A stretch of DNA of 64,000 nt from Anthoceros angustus. Taxonomy: Eukaryota; Plantae; Anthocerotophyta. Both the position numbers and the translations under genes were made by a program. Of this stretch, positions 19,242 through 41,990 are shown piece after piece. How positions within the stretch are numbered: position 1 is the first letter of the stretch; every line of letters starts with the position of its first letter. The notes under the pieces were generated by a model, which was not told the origin of the DNA, ran no database searches, and saw only the letters and a program-made list of their open reading frames with translations. The DNA lies in the NCBI GenBank assembly GCA_010909165.1, contig VJWM01000044.1, forward strand, positions 434,001 to 498,000, in the 5' to 3' direction.

Positions 19242-22200
19242 ATGCTGCTCGCATGGCGCGTGCATTCAGACTGGTTGGGTGATGGTTCCATTAAAGCTCG
19301 TTTTGCAGGAGTGGGTGGATCGTGTGGCGCTTGCGAGGATCGGCCTCAAAGATCCCTTGGTTGTGCAATCTCTGCCCCCGGCAAGGCCCTGGCTGGAGAA
19401 GCTTTCCCGGCTGGCCATGGCGTGGCAAGGTGGGAGGATGGGGAGCTGGAGCGGAGGCTGGGGGCCGTGCTGCGGCTGGATGAGCAGGGGAGGGTGCCGC
19501 CGGTGCAGTTGTTCAAGACGGTGTTGCAGGCTTGCACGAAGAGGAAGGCCCTGGCCGAGGCCAGACAGGTGCACGGGATTTTGGCAAAACATGGGTTGGA
19601 GGGTGATAAGTTTTTGAGCAACTTTTTGGTCACCACGCTGGTTGGGTGTGGAGGCTTTGCGGATGGAGTGGAGCTGTTTGGGAGGTTGGGTTGCCGGACT
19701 GTTTTGTCTTGGACGGCCATCATCTCAGGGTATAGTAATGGTGGGAGATGTAGGGAGGCTCTTGCGTGTTTTGAGAAGATGGAGGAGGAAGGTGTGGAGC
19801 CGGACAAGTATACGTTTGTGAGCTTGCTGAAGGCATGCAGCAGGCTGGAAGACTTGGATGAGGGCAGGCGGATCCATCTGGCCGCTGTGGAGCATGGGTT
19901 TGGGTCAGACGTGTTTGTGGGGAGCACGCTGGTTAGTATGTATGCGAAGTGTGGGAGCATAGCTGATGCGCAGAAGGTGTTTGATGGACTGTCTCAACGG
20001 AATGTTGTGTCGTGGAATGCGATGCTTGCTGCGTATGCACAGAAGGGACTGGCAGAGAGAGCTTTGGAGGTTTATGGGCAAATGCAGGAGGAAGGTGTCT
20101 GGCCGGACGGCCGCACCTTTGTCAGTGTCTTGCAGGCTTGTGGTTCCCTTGCTGAAATGGAGGAAGGTGCGGTTGTGGAGGGGCAGAAAGTTAAGGTGTT
20201 GGCTCTGAGGAAAGGGAGAGAAGTACATGCCGAAGCTGTCAGAATGGGGTTTGAGTCAGACGTGTTTGTGGCTAACACGTTGGTTAGTATGTATGCAAAG
20301 TGTGGCAACATGGTGGATGCCCAGCAGGTGTTTGACCGATCGTCCCACCGCACTGTAGTTTCATGGACAGCAATGGTGGCAGCATGTGTGCAGCAGGACC
20401 AAGGAGACATGGGCTTGCAAATTTATCATCAGATGAAAGAAGCAGGGTGTATGCCCAATTCTTGGACACTTGTCAACGTCCTTAAAGCGTGTAGCAGCAT
20501 TGCAGAAAGAGACAATGGGGAGCTTGTGGAAGGGCAGAGGATCAAAGTGTCAGTACTATGGAAGGGGAAGGAGCTACATGCTGAAGTCAAGCGCGCAGGT
20601 CTTGCTTCCGATGCTTTCGTCCTGGAGGCTTTGATCCGCATGTATGTTACGTGTGGCAGCATCAGTGATGCACAGCAGGTTTTTGATGATTTTCCGAACT
20701 GCAATGAAGAGGCATGGACGGCTATGCTTGCGGCATATGCCCAGCAAGGCCAAGGAGAGAGGGTTTTGCGCTTGTTTTTTCAAATGCGAGAGCTAGGTGT
20801 CGGACCGAGTGCTCAAACTTTTGTCCTTGCTCTACAGGCATGCCGTGCCCTTGCTGCAGAAGAGTTAAGCTCGCTTGTGTGTGGGCAAGCCTTCAAACTG
20901 CAGTCGCTGCAACTGGGGAAGGAAATTCATGCAGCAGCTGTCAGCATGGGTTTTGGATCAAACTTGTTTGTTGGTAGCTCTTTGATAAGTATGTATGCAA
21001 GATGTGGGAGCCTTGCAGAAGCACAGCAAGCGTTTGATAGATTGCCCAAGTATGACAGAGTGTCGTGGACTGCCCTGCTCACAGCATATGCTCAGCATGG
21101 TCAAGGAGAGAAGGCCTTGCAAACATACTTCCAAATGAAAGAGGAAGGCTTCAAGCCGGATGGTCAGACCTTTGTCGGCCTTCTCCAGGCATGTGCCGCC
21201 CTTGCAGAAAAGGAAGTCAGCAATGTACACGGCGTTAAACTGGAGTCACTGCGCAAAGGAAGAGAACTACATTCTGAAGCTGTGAGCATGGGATGGGAAA
21301 CAAACGTGTTTGTTGGTACTGCTTTGATCAGTATGTATGCAAAGTGTGGATGCATCCCGGAGGCAGAAGAAGTGTTTGAGCGATTGCCTCAGCACAATGT
21401 GGTGTCATGGACTGCAATGATTGCAGCATATACTCAGCATGACCATGGAGAGAAGGCCTTGCAACTCTATGGTCAGATGCAAGGTGAAGGCATGATGCCA
21501 GTGGAAACCACTTATCTGTCTGTCCTGGAAGCTTGCAGCAGGACAGGAGCTATAGGGATGTGCTTGCAGACCCACAGAAGTATTCTGGAAAGAGAATTTG
21601 AGTGTAGCCTCTATTTGACAAACAGTCTCATTCATGCATATGGCAAATGTGGGAGCATGGTGGATGCTCATCGTGTATTCGACTCACTGCCCCAGCCCGA
21701 CGTGGTGTCATGGAATGCACTGATTGCTGGGTACGCTCGACTAGGCGATTGTGAGACAAGTATCCGGTGTTTCGAGGAGATGTGCGATGCTGGTGTTGAG
21801 CCAGATGGTGTCACATTCATGGCACTTATCTTGGGATGCAGTCATGCTTGCATGGTGGATAAGGGACTGAAGTACTTCGAAAGCATGACCAGGGATTATG
21901 AGATAACTGCAGAGCTGGACCATTATGTCTCGATGATCGATCTTGTAGGTCGTGCAGGACTGTTCACCAAGGCAGACGATCTGCTTCGTGAAATGCCAAT
22001 GCAACCTGATTTTAGTGTGTGGCTGTGTTTGCTGGGTGCTTGCCGAAATCATAGCAATGTGATGCTGGGAAGGCATTGTTTCAATCTTGCAACTAGTCTT
22101 GAGCCAACACAAGCTGCACCGTATGTCCTCATGTCAAACATCTATGCTCAACTTGGCATGTGGGATTCTGCCGAGGAAATAGATGGGCTCAGACAGAGAG

Positions 22201-22337
22201 CAGGTGTGCGAAAGACGCCTGGCCAGACCTGGATTGAACATGAAGAAAAAGTTCACACATTCCTGGTTGATGATCAGAAGCATCCGCACACAGCCCAGCT
22301 GTATGCATTGCTGAAGGATTTGAGCTTGCAGCTGTGA
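19242..22337 (+). CDS. PLS-class PPR protein, E1-E2-E+ (PG box, truncated before the deaminase), intronless, 1031 aa
   Basis: About 23 P/L/S motifs (VVSWNAM.., FVG..L..MYAKCG), then E1/E2 and KTPGQTWIEHEEKVHTFLVDDQKHPH followed by a stop. No HxE/CxxC. Confidence 0.95.
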   Translation: MLLAWRVHSDWLGDGSIKARFAGVGGSCGACEDRPQRSLGCAISAPGKALAGEAFPAGHGVARWEDGELERRLGAVLRLDEQGRVPPVQLFKTVLQACTKRKALAEARQVHGILAKHGLEGDKFLSNFLVTTLVGCGGFADGVELFGRLGCRTVLSWTAIISGYSNGGRCREALACFEKMEEEGVEPDKYTFVSLLKACSRLEDLDEGRRIHLAAVEHGFGSDVFVGSTLVSMYAKCGSIADAQKVFDGLSQRNVVSWNAMLAAYAQKGLAERALEVYGQMQEEGVWPDGRTFVSVLQACGSLAEMEEGAVVEGQKVKVLALRKGREVHAEAVRMGFESDVFVANTLVSMYAKCGNMVDAQQVFDRSSHRTVVSWTAMVAACVQQDQGDMGLQIYHQMKEAGCMPNSWTLVNVLKACSSIAERDNGELVEGQRIKVSVLWKGKELHAEVKRAGLASDAFVLEALIRMYVTCGSISDAQQVFDDFPNCNEEAWTAMLAAYAQQGQGERVLRLFFQMRELGVGPSAQTFVLALQACRALAAEELSSLVCGQAFKLQSLQLGKEIHAAAVSMGFGSNLFVGSSLISMYARCGSLAEAQQAFDRLPKYDRVSWTALLTAYAQHGQGEKALQTYFQMKEEGFKPDGQTFVGLLQACAALAEKEVSNVHGVKLESLRKGRELHSEAVSMGWETNVFVGTALISMYAKCGCIPEAEEVFERLPQHNVVSWTAMIAAYTQHDHGEKALQLYGQMQGEGMMPVETTYLSVLEACSRTGAIGMCLQTHRSILEREFECSLYLTNSLIHAYGKCGSMVDAHRVFDSLPQPDVVSWNALIAGYARLGDCETSIRCFEEMCDAGVEPDGVTFMALILGCSHACMVDKGLKYFESMTRDYEITAELDHYVSMIDLVGRAGLFTKADDLLREMPMQPDFSVWLCLLGACRNHSNVMLGRHCFNLATSLEPTQAAPYVLMSNIYAQLGMWDSAEEIDGLRQRAGVRKTPGQTWIEHEEKVHTFLVDDQKHPHTAQLYALLKDLSLQL

Positions 22338-22629
22338 CTAAACAACGAAGCAAATGAAAGTGCTTTTTTCTCGTGTTGTTAACCTCGACCACCAAATTTT
22401 CACTCAAACCGCTGTCCTCAGTTCTTAAGCCAAGTTGTAGGTGCTATGAGCTCGACCGTCCGCAATCGAACCTATGAAAAGGGAACATGATCGCGAACAT
22501 GAAAGCACGCAGCAGGGCATGCTTGCCGAAGTGCGTGTTTCGTGTTTCCTCACCTCAAATGGAGCGTGATTAGCCAAAACACGATGGGTTAAATGAGACT
22601 GGCCCTGGTCCAGGAGGGAACCAGCGCAG

Positions 22630-25600
22630 ATGAGAAGAGGTAGAGGCTTGGGGCGAAGTTGGGTTGTGGCCGGCGTGATTGAGGGGAAGCCTTTGAAGAA
22701 ATGGTTCGCACAGCTACGATCATTGAATTCATTGGACATCGAGAGATCCCCCCGAGCAGCACGGATTGGTAGAGACTTCTATCGACCCTGGATTGAGCAT
22801 GGAGCTGAGGAATGTGGGAGGTCCAAGTTTCTTCCCGCCGCCATGCAGATGTGTTGTGACCGTAGACGCAGAGATGTTGGCTGTGGTAGTCTGTGGTCCT
22901 TGCATGTTTTTTGTTTTTGACAGTTTCTTCAACTTTGCAGAGCGGCAGGAGGCCTACATGATGGACGCTGGGACAACCCAATTGAGGCCTTGGACCTTCT
23001 GGTGCAGCGAGGATCTTATGTGCCGCCGTCTGTCGTGTATGATGTGCTCAAGGGGTGCATGGGAAAGAAAGATGTGGCTATGGGCAGGCGTGCTCATTCT
23101 CTTGCCCTTCAATCCGGCTACGAGTCGAACGCGTTCTTGGCCAACCACCTCATCCGCATGTATGCCTCACAGGGCACTTTGCAGGAGGCTACGCAGGTTT
23201 TTACCAGGCTTCCTGCACCGGACGTCTTCGTGTGGGCCTCTATTATTTCGGCACATTCTGAGTGTGGGCAGCCCACAAAGGCTATAAGCCTGTATCATGA
23301 GATGCAGCAGTCCAGTGCTATGGTGGATGATTATGTGACGGTGGCAGTGCTGAAAGCATGTGCTAGTGCCGTGGACTTGGCTTCTGGAAAGCAGGTCCAT
23401 GCTGACATATTGAAGAGTGGGGTGGAGCCAAACACATTTGTTGGCAACTGCTTGGTGGACATGTACGCCAAATGTGGGAGCTTGGAGGCTGCCCGCCGCG
23501 TGTTTGATGCATTGCCAACAAGAGATGTGGTGGCATGGACTGCCATGATTGCAGGGTATGCTCAGCATGGATTTGGTAACGAGGCTCTTAGACTGTATGC
23601 AAGGATGCAGCAGGAGGGCATCACTCCGGCCGATCGTGTGACGTTTGTCTGCCTCCTGAAAGCATGCACCATCGCTGGAGCTTTGATTGAGGGCAAGCAG
23701 CTTCATTCCCAGATTCAGGAAAGAGGCCTCGGAGAGGATCTGATGGTTGGCAACAGTCTGGTGGATATGTATGCCAAATGTGGGAGCTTGGAGGATGCTC
23801 GGAACGTGTTTGACAGCTTGCCTGTCAGAGATGTTGTGACTTGGACTGCCATAATTGCAGGATATGCTCAGCATGGTCTTGGCCAAGAAGCGCTCTCTCT
23901 TTATATGAGTATGCAGCAGGAAGGAGTCTCTCTGGCCAACAGTTTCACGCTCGTATGCCTGCTGAAAGCATGTGCTGCCATTGGAGCTCTGCATGAGGGA
24001 AAACGGCTCCATTCCCTCATTCAGGAACAAGGGCTGGAATCTGATGTGGTCGTTGGTACCAGCCTGGTGGACATGTACGCCAAGTGTGGGAGCTTGGAAG
24101 ATGCACGAAGAGTTTTTCAGACACTGCCCACCAAAAATGTGGTAACATGGACTGCTATGATCTCGGCATGCACACAGCGTGGGCTTGCCCAGGAGGCTAT
24201 CACCCTCTACGCCGGTATGCAACAGGGGGGCATCGAACCAGCCAATTCTGTTACGTTTGTGTCTCTCCTGAAAGCATGTGCCAGTGTGGGAGCGTTGTGT
24301 GATGGCAGGGAGATGCATTCTCAGATCCGGAAGAGGGGACTGGAATCTGATGTGGTTGTTGCCAACAGCCTGGTGGACATGTATGCAAAATGTGGCAGCT
24401 TAGAGGATGCCCGCCTGGTGTTTGACAGATTAGAGACGAAAGATGTAGTAACGTGGAATGCCATGATCGCAGGATATGCTCAGAATGGGGACGGGCAAGA
24501 AGCACTGAGCCTGTATAGATGTATGCAGCAGGAGGGGGTTTCTCCAGCTGATGGTGTCACATTCGTGTGCCTCTTGAAAGCTTGTGCCAGTGCTGGGGCC
24601 TTGCCCGAGGCAAAGGAGCTGCAGACTCAGATTCAGGAAAGTGGTTTGGAAGCCGATGTAATTGTTGCCAATGGCCTGGTGGACGTGTATGCAAAATGCG
24701 GGAGCTTGGAGGATGCTCGCACAGTGTTTGAGCGGATGCCCATTAAGGATGTAGTCTCCTGGAATGCCTTGATATCAGGGTACTTGCAGCATGGGCTTGC
24801 GCAAGAATCTCTCACGCTGTACGCCCGTATGGAGGTGGAGGCCATAACTCAAGCTGATCATGTCACATTTATGTGCCTACTGAGGGCATGTGCAAGCATC
24901 GGAGGCTTGCATCAGGGGAAGCAGCTTCATGCTCGGATTCAGGACGCAGGACTGGAAGCCGATGTCATGATTGGCAGCTGCCTGGTGGACATGTACGCGA
25001 AGTGCGGGAGCTTAGAGGATGCTCGCAGAGCGTTTGACAGGTTGCCCAGACGAGATGTTGCCACATGGAACTCCCTGCTGAACGGCTGCAGCCAACACGG
25101 GGACGGGAGGCTGGCTGTGCAGTGGTTACAGGAGATGCAGCAACAGGGAGTTGAGCCTGATGAAGCCACGTTCACTTGCCTCCTCGTGGCTTGCACTCGC
25201 GAAGGCTTGGTGCATGAAGGTTTCGAGCTTTTCAATTCCATGCTCCAAAACCACGGTGTGGCCCCTAACGCTTACCACCACAACTGCCTGGTGGACTTGC
25301 TTGCCCGCGCAGGCCGCATGGCCGAGGCAGAAGACCTGCTGCGATCCATGCCCGTGCAGGACAACATAGTCGGATGGACATCCTTGCTCACAGCTTGCAA
25401 GACTTTCGGTGACCTAGACCGCGGCCAGCGATGCTTCGACATTCTCACCACAGTGCAACCTGACCACGTCCCGGCGTATACCTTAATGGCCAACAGCTTC
25501 GCCGACGCCGGCCTGTGGCAGGACGTGGCCAGGATAGAATCGTTGAGAATAACCGCAGGTGCCTTCAAGAAGCCTGCCAGGGCGTGGATCGAGCTCAACA

Positions 25601-25971
25601 GCAAGGTACACGCCTTCACCGTCGGCGAGGACAGGGATGACGTCTCCTCCAAACTAACAAGCGTGAACCTGCGCATCAAGGAGCTAGGAGGCCATGTCCC
25701 GCGCACGGACCTGGTGCTCAAGGTAGCTTCGGACGCCGAAAAGGAAGACGCCCTGTGCGGCCACGCTGAGAAGCTAGCTCTGGCATACGGCCTCCTCAAC
25801 ACTCCAGACGGCACCAGCCTGCTGGTCACCAAGAACCTCCGCATGTGCGACGACTGCCATAGCGGCACCAAGGTCATGTCCAAGATCGAGAAGCGGGAGA
25901 TCATAGTCCGAGACGCCCGCCGTGTTCACCGGTTTGTGGATGGAGTCTGTTCTTGCGGAGACCGCCATTGA
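22630..25971 (+). CDS. PLS-class PPR-DYW protein of the DYW:KP / DRH type (candidate U-to-C RNA editing factor)
   Basis: About 23 PLS motifs, E1, E2, then KKPARAWIE...HAEKLA...KNLRMCDDCH...CSCGDRH*. The main exon starts after the acceptor TTGCAG at 22940. The first exon and the start at 22630 are inferred. Confidence 0.93.
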
Positions 25972-26766: not shown

Positions 26767-28826
<2,060 letters not shown>

Positions 28827-41135: not shown

Positions 41136-41990
41136 ATGGCGGCGACCTCCTCTGCGTGCCTCAGTCTGGGGAGCTGCGCGGTGGTGTGCAGGCTGCCCCA
41201 GGCGCAGGTTTCGGGCGCGGGGGCCTGCTGCGGGGGCTTGGAGAGGCCGTTTCTAGGGTTCAGTCTGAGGTGCGGGAATGCGGGGAGCCAGACGGCGGCG
41301 GCCGGGGCCGGGGCCGGGGCGCTGAGAGTGCAGGCCAATGCAGCGGCGGCGGTGGAGGCAGTGGAGGCGGAGGGATCCAAGGTTCAGCGGCTGAAGCTGG
41401 CGTACCTCACCAAGGTGGTGCCGGCGCTGAAGGAGGAGTTCAAGTACACCAACGACATGGAGGTGCCGAAGGTGAAGAAGGTGGTGGTGAACTGCGGCGT
41501 CGGGGAGGCGGCGCAGAATGCCAAGTCCCTGGAGGCCACGGTGCGGGATATCTCGCTCATTACCGGGCAGAAGCCGATTGTGACCAGGGCGCGGAAGGCC
41601 ATCGCCGGGTTCAAGCTCCGGAAGGGAGTGCCGGTGGGAGTGGCGCTCACGCTGCGCGGTGAGCTCATGTACTCGTTTCTGGACAGGCTGCTGAACCTGG
41701 CCCTGCCCCGGACGCGGGATTTTCAGGGGGTGAATGCGTATGGCTTCGACGGCCGGGGGAACTACACGCTGGGAATGCCGGAGCAGAGCGTGTTCCCGGA
41801 GATCAAGTTTGAGAACATCGACAGGCAAAGGGGGATGGACATCTCCATCATCACCACTGCCAAGACAGACCAGGAGAGCCAGAAATTGCTCAGCTTGTTA
41901 GGGATGCCTTACAAGGAAAACTCTACCAAGGCTATCAGGTTGCGGAAGAAGGGCAAGCTCATTGGCAAGGGTGGCAAGAGGCGCAGGTAG
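41136..41990 (+). CDS. RPL5: Plastid ribosomal protein uL5c with transit peptide, intronless
   Basis: Ser/Ala-rich N-terminus, then [37 protein letters not shown] and [10 protein letters not shown]. Confidence 0.95.

Follow-up and report, generated by a model that had tools for sequence, protein, structure and literature searches.

The window, by which we mean the whole 64,000-nucleotide stretch of DNA that was analysed, carries on its forward strand a PPR gene modelled with two exons, whose coding body is a single open frame of 993 codons (22990-25971 in the open reading frame listing). An open frame of this length has a computed probability of ~2e-21 in random sequence, and chance is excluded because the frame is filled with PPR motifs and closed by a DYW domain. 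The original prediction had drawn attention to a complete DYW deaminase domain at 25480-25971. Completeness of the domain was confirmed; the start of that interval, however, falls inside the E2 motif, and the domain proper is the shorter interval given in Table 1.

Directly upstream, at 19242-22337 (+), lies a 1031-codon PLS PPR gene of the E+ type. In this gene the PG box is canonical (KTPGQTWIE) and the HP dipeptide is retained, but the DYW domain is cut off by a stop after ~40 residues; insertions of ~12 residues seem to be present in several L motifs. The two genes form a tandem pair, a truncated PG-type gene followed by a complete KP-type gene, and ~110 nt separate the stop codon of the first from the start of the transcript contig of the second. 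Cyclin-dependent-kinase-like exons with a PSTAIRE motif (27046-28106 (+); Pfam Pkinase E 5.5e-15) begin ~1 kb past the stop codon of the PPR gene, which indicates a compact genome. A hornwort origin is consistent with the DRH type of the deaminase domain, the neighbouring E+ gene and the close packing of genes. Elsewhere in the window, an open reading frame at 41136-41990 (+) has both ribosomal protein L5 domains after an N-terminal extension of ~105 residues, and could be a nuclear gene for organellar RPL5. A 383-codon antisense open reading frame within the PPR gene (23167-24318 (-)) most probably reflects the repeats and codon bias of the sense frame rather than a gene of its own.

Table 1. 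Coordinates of the PPR gene, its protein modules and the diagnostic residues of its deaminase domain
Feature	Position in window	Strand	Description and evidence
Exon 1	22446..22820	+	5' UTR, ATG at 22630, 63-codon basic N-terminal extension
Intron of in-frame isoform	22821..22940	+	120 nt, GT..AG
Longer intron version	22769-22940	+	172 nt, GT..AG; same-species run X1; ATG 22630 out of frame
Exon 2	22941..25971	+	Unbroken coding sequence through stop codon
PPR array	22963..25056	+	Pfam PPR families E ~1e-116; contiguous motif parse
P2-L2-S2 triplet	25057..25365	+	Motif parse
E1 and E2 motifs	25366..25569	+	34 aa each; Pfam E_motif E 3.6e-9
DYW:KP deaminase domain, DRH subtype (sequence-based assignment)	25570..25968	+	133 aa; Pfam DYW_deaminase E=2e-34
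KPARA	25570-25584	+	In place of PG box; KPARAWIE starts at 25570
GEDRD/DVSSKL segment	25624-25659	+	xHP tripeptide missing, deletion point 25638|25639
HAE	25762-25770	+	HAEKLA from 25762
Lys88	25831-25833	+	TK(88)NLRM(92)CDDCH context
Met92 and CDDCH	25843-25860	+	Translation
CSCGDRH	25948-25968	+	Followed by stop codon ending at 25971

Transcription and splicing at the 5' end

We used contigs from public sequencing runs to examine the 5' end of the gene, and in contigs of three species exon 1 has two donors, 22768|22769 and 22820|22821. Run X1, which holds 92% of the locus's sampled words, yields contigs that tile the gene with 0 differences from the window (100% identical). One of them joins 22446-22767 to 22940-23472, likewise with 0 differences, and inside the gap of this contig, at 22788 and 22835-22929, X1 has no depth at all; together, the gap and the zero depth within it show that the run contains spliced RNA. 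The gene is therefore transcribed and its 5' intron removed. A second isoform in X1, considered from binned depth, was rejected on the same zero-depth positions.

The donor at 22768|22769 is the one used by this sole same-species transcript contig. Through it, the ATG at 22630 opens a 161-codon frame that overlaps the PPR frame out of register with it, while the PPR frame hits a stop codon at the junction and has its next obvious start at ATG 23059. A 1-nt assembly error at the GGG run near 22970 was considered as the cause of the frame shift and rejected, as contigs of three species cross 22939-23475 with no gap.

Two related species have contigs over the same locus with ~5% differing letters. 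An X6 contig joins 22558-22818 to 22939-23482, and X2 contigs end at 22820 and resume at 22939; by species, one contig of organism C spans the junction 22820|22941, and contigs of organism B break at both positions. The donor of the related species lies 52 nt downstream of the X1 donor and puts ATG 22630 in frame, giving a 1073-residue protein. This in-frame donor is seen only in the two related species, from which we infer an in-frame, productive isoform in the window's own species. A DNA-like contig of organism B has no listed difference at either donor site, so alternative donor use is likely in all three species. The claim that the factor is full length stands for the PPR-E1-E2-DYW body, which reaches 1073 aa with the 5' exon; the same-species contig uses a donor that leaves the upstream ATG out of frame.

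This splicing pattern raises the question of whether the gene is a recently disabled or redundant family copy, with its coding body intact and its initiator ATG spliced out of frame here. We regard this as very improbable. The same-species donor, with its out-of-frame product, points in that direction, and a very large family could tolerate the loss of a single copy, but 993 sense codons with all functional residues intact are unexpected in a dead gene, both related species use the in-frame donor, and neither donor site differs from the organism B DNA contig. Moreover, minor isoforms drop out of assembled contigs, hence the absence of the in-frame isoform from X1 is not established.

The N-terminal extension that the in-frame donor adds (63-64 residues) is basic, with 8 K/R against 1 D/E in the first 30 aa, and a Pfam search of the extension found no domain. 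Its composition would be compatible with an organelle presequence.

Protein architecture and classification of the deaminase domain

Parsing of the translated frame into motifs gave, in order, an incomplete P motif, one L and one S motif and six P1-L1-S1 triplets (P1 of 35-36 aa, L1 of 35 and S1 of 31), ahead of the P2-L2-S2 triplet and the E1 and E2 motifs. The interval from 22963 to 25569 parses without gaps into 869 residues, with ~24 PPR motifs in all. The protein is thus a PLS-class PPR protein with the architecture (P1L1S1)n-P2L2S2-E1E2-DYW, which is standard for an editing factor. We then applied the established PPR code to residue 5 and the final residue in the P and S motifs, with S2 aligned to position -4. 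Our own reading predicts U at -25, UG at -22/-21, UA at -19/-18, AA at -16/-15, UU at -13/-12, UU at -10/-9, GU at -7/-6 and a pyrimidine at -4; the L motifs carry mostly V/D and are not interpretable by the code.

The C-terminal domain measures 133 aa, as expected of DYW:KP domains (132-133) and as opposed to 136 in canonical DYW domains. In alignment A1, PG-type rows carry P-G-C/x-S-W at the columns of KPARA, and the gap falls opposite the 'SHP' of OTP86 (7o4e) and of 26 PG-type domains. HAE is found in 31 of the 32 KP-labelled rows (HVE in the other) and HSE in 26 of 26 PG rows, the two groups being defined by this very residue. Met92 occupies the KP position at which PG domains have Val95 (LRM-C versus LRV-C), and the C-terminal triplet is DRH, not DYW, as in the DRH subgroup. 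These column discriminators (KPAxA, the three-residue deletion, HAE, LRM-C and the terminal triplet) are the ones named in PMC9478123. Lys88 does not discriminate KP from PG because it is common to PG domains. All zinc ligands and catalytic residues are intact in both alignment and translation.

Each of the motif observations in the original prediction was reproduced: KKPARAWIE in place of the PG box, HAEKLA rather than HSEKLA, an intact CxxC (MCDDCH), a shortened, putatively gating segment that has lost the HP dipeptide, and a DRH terminus. The DYW:KP class read from them holds as well, with KPAxA, HAE, loss of xHP, M92 and a non-DYW end all present. Set against the DYW:PG factors OTP86, DYW1 and 9kfx, the protein shares the fold, the zinc ligands, the catalytic Glu and the PLS-E1-E2 scaffold, whereas the PG box, HSE, xHP, V95 and the DYW end are all replaced, which takes it out of the canonical DYW:PG class; the expected direction of its reaction would be reversed.

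Word searches with the domain as query placed it among KP-type proteins. The best 26 matches have the KP-type alanine in HxE (one has HVE), are 57-73% identical and end in triplets such as DRH, GRP and DRP; the nearest relatives share the DRH end and are 65-73% identical in the domain. PG-type (HSE...DYW) proteins start at ~52% identity in the word search, and the best named KP-type relatives are from ferns (50-58%). By alignment, identity is 40-50% to PG-type domains versus 62-71% to DRH/GRP-type relatives. A word search for an orthologue with the C-terminal 419 residues recovered paralogues only, the best of them 62% identical.

To place the domain phylogenetically, we built a maximum-likelihood tree of 70 DYW domains, for which 12 of 63 near-redundant GYW rows were kept. 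In it the query is nested within 31 KP-type rows (clade support 100/99, stem length 0.44) and, among these, belongs to a 19-row subclade (98/93) in which every DRH and GRP row is found; GRP rows make up a clade of their own (100/97). Profiles were made from 32 KP rows and 26 PG rows, with the query left out of both, and the query scores 272 bits with the KP profile versus 187 with the PG profile, a difference of +85 that lies mid-range among KP members (+39 to +98) and outside the range of PG members (-107 to -30); the KP reference rows were gathered by similarity to the query, and the motif labels (HAE/HSE, end) are independent of that selection. The phylogenetic and profile comparison proposed alongside the original prediction has thus been run, and the domain does not cluster with canonical PG or WW types.

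Two further positions bear on the subgroup. The protein retains a terminal Asp and a Lys four residues after CDDCH, the latter presumably the counterpart of K103 of PMC9478123. GRP proteins are without the terminal Asp, and four GRP relatives have T, E or Q in place of the Lys; assignment to the DRH subgroup fits because both residues are kept here. The DRH end, KPAxA, HAE, the 133-aa domain, the terminal Asp, the Lys after CxxCH and the upstream P2-L2-S2-E1-E2 are shared with the hornwort DRH subgroup and, as described, with KP1 built mainly on it. Collectively, these comparisons support a sequence-based assignment of the domain to DYW:KP, DRH subgroup.

An AlphaFold2 model of E2 and the DYW domain, built on alignment A1, reached a pLDDT of 93.8 and a pTM of 0.85. 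The top Foldseek match is 9kfx, a synthetic PPR-DYW/RNA complex (TM 0.89, rmsd 1.8 Å), followed by the OTP86 DYW domain (7o4e, 7o4f), DYW1 (7w86) and then bacterial cytidine deaminase toxins. Foldseek E values for the DYW matches (OTP86, DYW1, 9kfx) run from 1e-18 to 1e-9, and a PDB sequence search agrees. The predicted structure places the HxE...CxxC zinc site on a cytidine-deaminase-like fold.

Direction of editing

DYW:KP domains occur only in the lineages that edit U to C, namely hornworts, lycophytes and ferns. Those of hornworts fall into DRH and GRP subgroups (PMC9478123), the DRH subgroup taking its name, as cited there, from Gerke et al. 2020 (New Phytol). The original prediction had spread the GRP/DRH variants over hornworts, some lycophytes and ferns; the hornwort part is correct, and the fern and lycophyte part is not, as both are hornwort subgroups in PMC9478123.

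We consider it probable, at roughly 70%, that the gene, nuclear and from an Anthoceros-type hornwort, encodes an organelle-directed PLS-class PPR protein that acts as a U-to-C editing factor of the DYW:KP family, DRH subgroup. The basic N-terminal extension would import the protein into the plastid or the mitochondrion, where the ~24 PPR motifs would line a single-stranded organellar transcript at one nucleotide per motif, with residue 5 and the final residue in the P and S motifs reading its bases. The E1/E2 motifs and the DYW:KP domain would then be placed over the base four nucleotides downstream of S2, and the zinc site (HAE...CDDCH) together with Lys88 would turn that uridine into cytidine, possibly through the lysine-uridine Schiff-base intermediate proposed from designer KP proteins.

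What is known of the reaction comes from such designs. Of seven consensus designs tried in E. coli, three convert U to C: KP2 and KP3, of the GRP type, and KP6, of the fern type (PMC9478123). The statement that synthetic DYW:KP constructs perform U-to-C editing is accurate for these three and does not extend to KP1, which was built mainly on DRH proteins and is outside the active set (PMC9478123). U-to-C conversion by KP2, KP3 and KP6 needs HAE, CxxC and Lys88 (PMC9478123, PMC11845758, PMC11332814). Lys88 is essential and has been proposed to form a Schiff-base crosslink with uridine; the designs do not proceed beyond a protein-RNA crosslink, whereas in a fern the edited RNA is found free. The present domain belongs to the same KP clade as KP2, KP3 and KP6 and shares with them HAE, Lys88, M92 and the xHP deletion, and all experimental evidence for U-to-C editing and the Lys88 mechanism comes from these three.

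Family membership alone does not fix the direction because KP6 can also carry out C-to-U editing, and it does edit both ways in human cells and in vitro. The protein may therefore be a C-to-U or two-way site-specific organellar editing factor rather than a dedicated U-to-C enzyme, a reading that we judge unlikely. Its active-site residues are common to PG-type deaminases, a change of Lys88 switches KP proteins to efficient C-to-U editing, and the DRH design was without U-to-C activity in E. coli. Here, however, the KP state is found at Lys88, HAE and M92 alike; the designs tested in E. coli showed no detectable C-to-U activity, and the distribution of the KP domain tracks U-to-C editing.

The inactivity of KP1 lends itself to another explanation, in which the DRH-type domain is inert on its own and the protein, dependent on a partner enzyme or cofactor, binds RNA to provide specificity or stability. 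Recruitment of a DYW domain in trans by E+ or truncated PPR proteins is established in other plants, and an E+ PPR gene lies directly upstream here; the GRP and fern designs, moreover, were active where the DRH-based one was not. We nonetheless find this quite improbable, as the zinc ligands, the catalytic Glu and Lys88 are all conserved across DRH relatives, which argues for selection on catalysis, and a consensus design may fail for trivial reasons, as discussed in PMC11332814. As described, KP1 is a consensus with no U-to-C activity in E. coli, whereas the present protein is the product of one native gene and has a 24-motif PPR array that is its own.

There is also a small chance that DRH-type DYW:KP proteins differ functionally from the uridine-aminating GRP and fern types in partner, cofactor or organellar context, or by acting at a different step, with the two 5' donors perhaps serving as an on/off control of the protein. 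If DRH-type function does differ, an intact, transcribed native gene would offer a test case for the failed DRH consensus, and any DRH-type gene bears on why that design was inactive.

Significance and family context

To date, consensus-designed KP proteins are the only ones with which reverse (U-to-C) editing has been reproduced. In the papers and the review covered, up to December 2025, there is no assay of a native DYW:KP enzyme, and synthetic proteins are the only proof of function. Since no native enzyme-target pair has been demonstrated, any DYW:KP gene that is native and intact, and whose PPR code can be read, is a usable candidate for a first native assay.

The gene itself is an ordinary member of a large hornwort family catalogued since 2020, so finding it is unsurprising. 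PPR genes make up ~7.9% of predicted genes in Anthoceros angustus and number 2,308 in A. agrestis, and the designs of 2022 had already drawn on DYW proteins extracted from the A. angustus genome (PMC9478123). Within the gene, summed contig depth (at least 85% identity) over 25650-25917 (+) and over S-motif stretches in 23372-24577 exceeds that of the flanks by factors of tens to thousands in four of four runs, which points to many expressed or genomic paralogues with near-identical HAEKLA...CDDCH and YAKCGSLEDA stretches.
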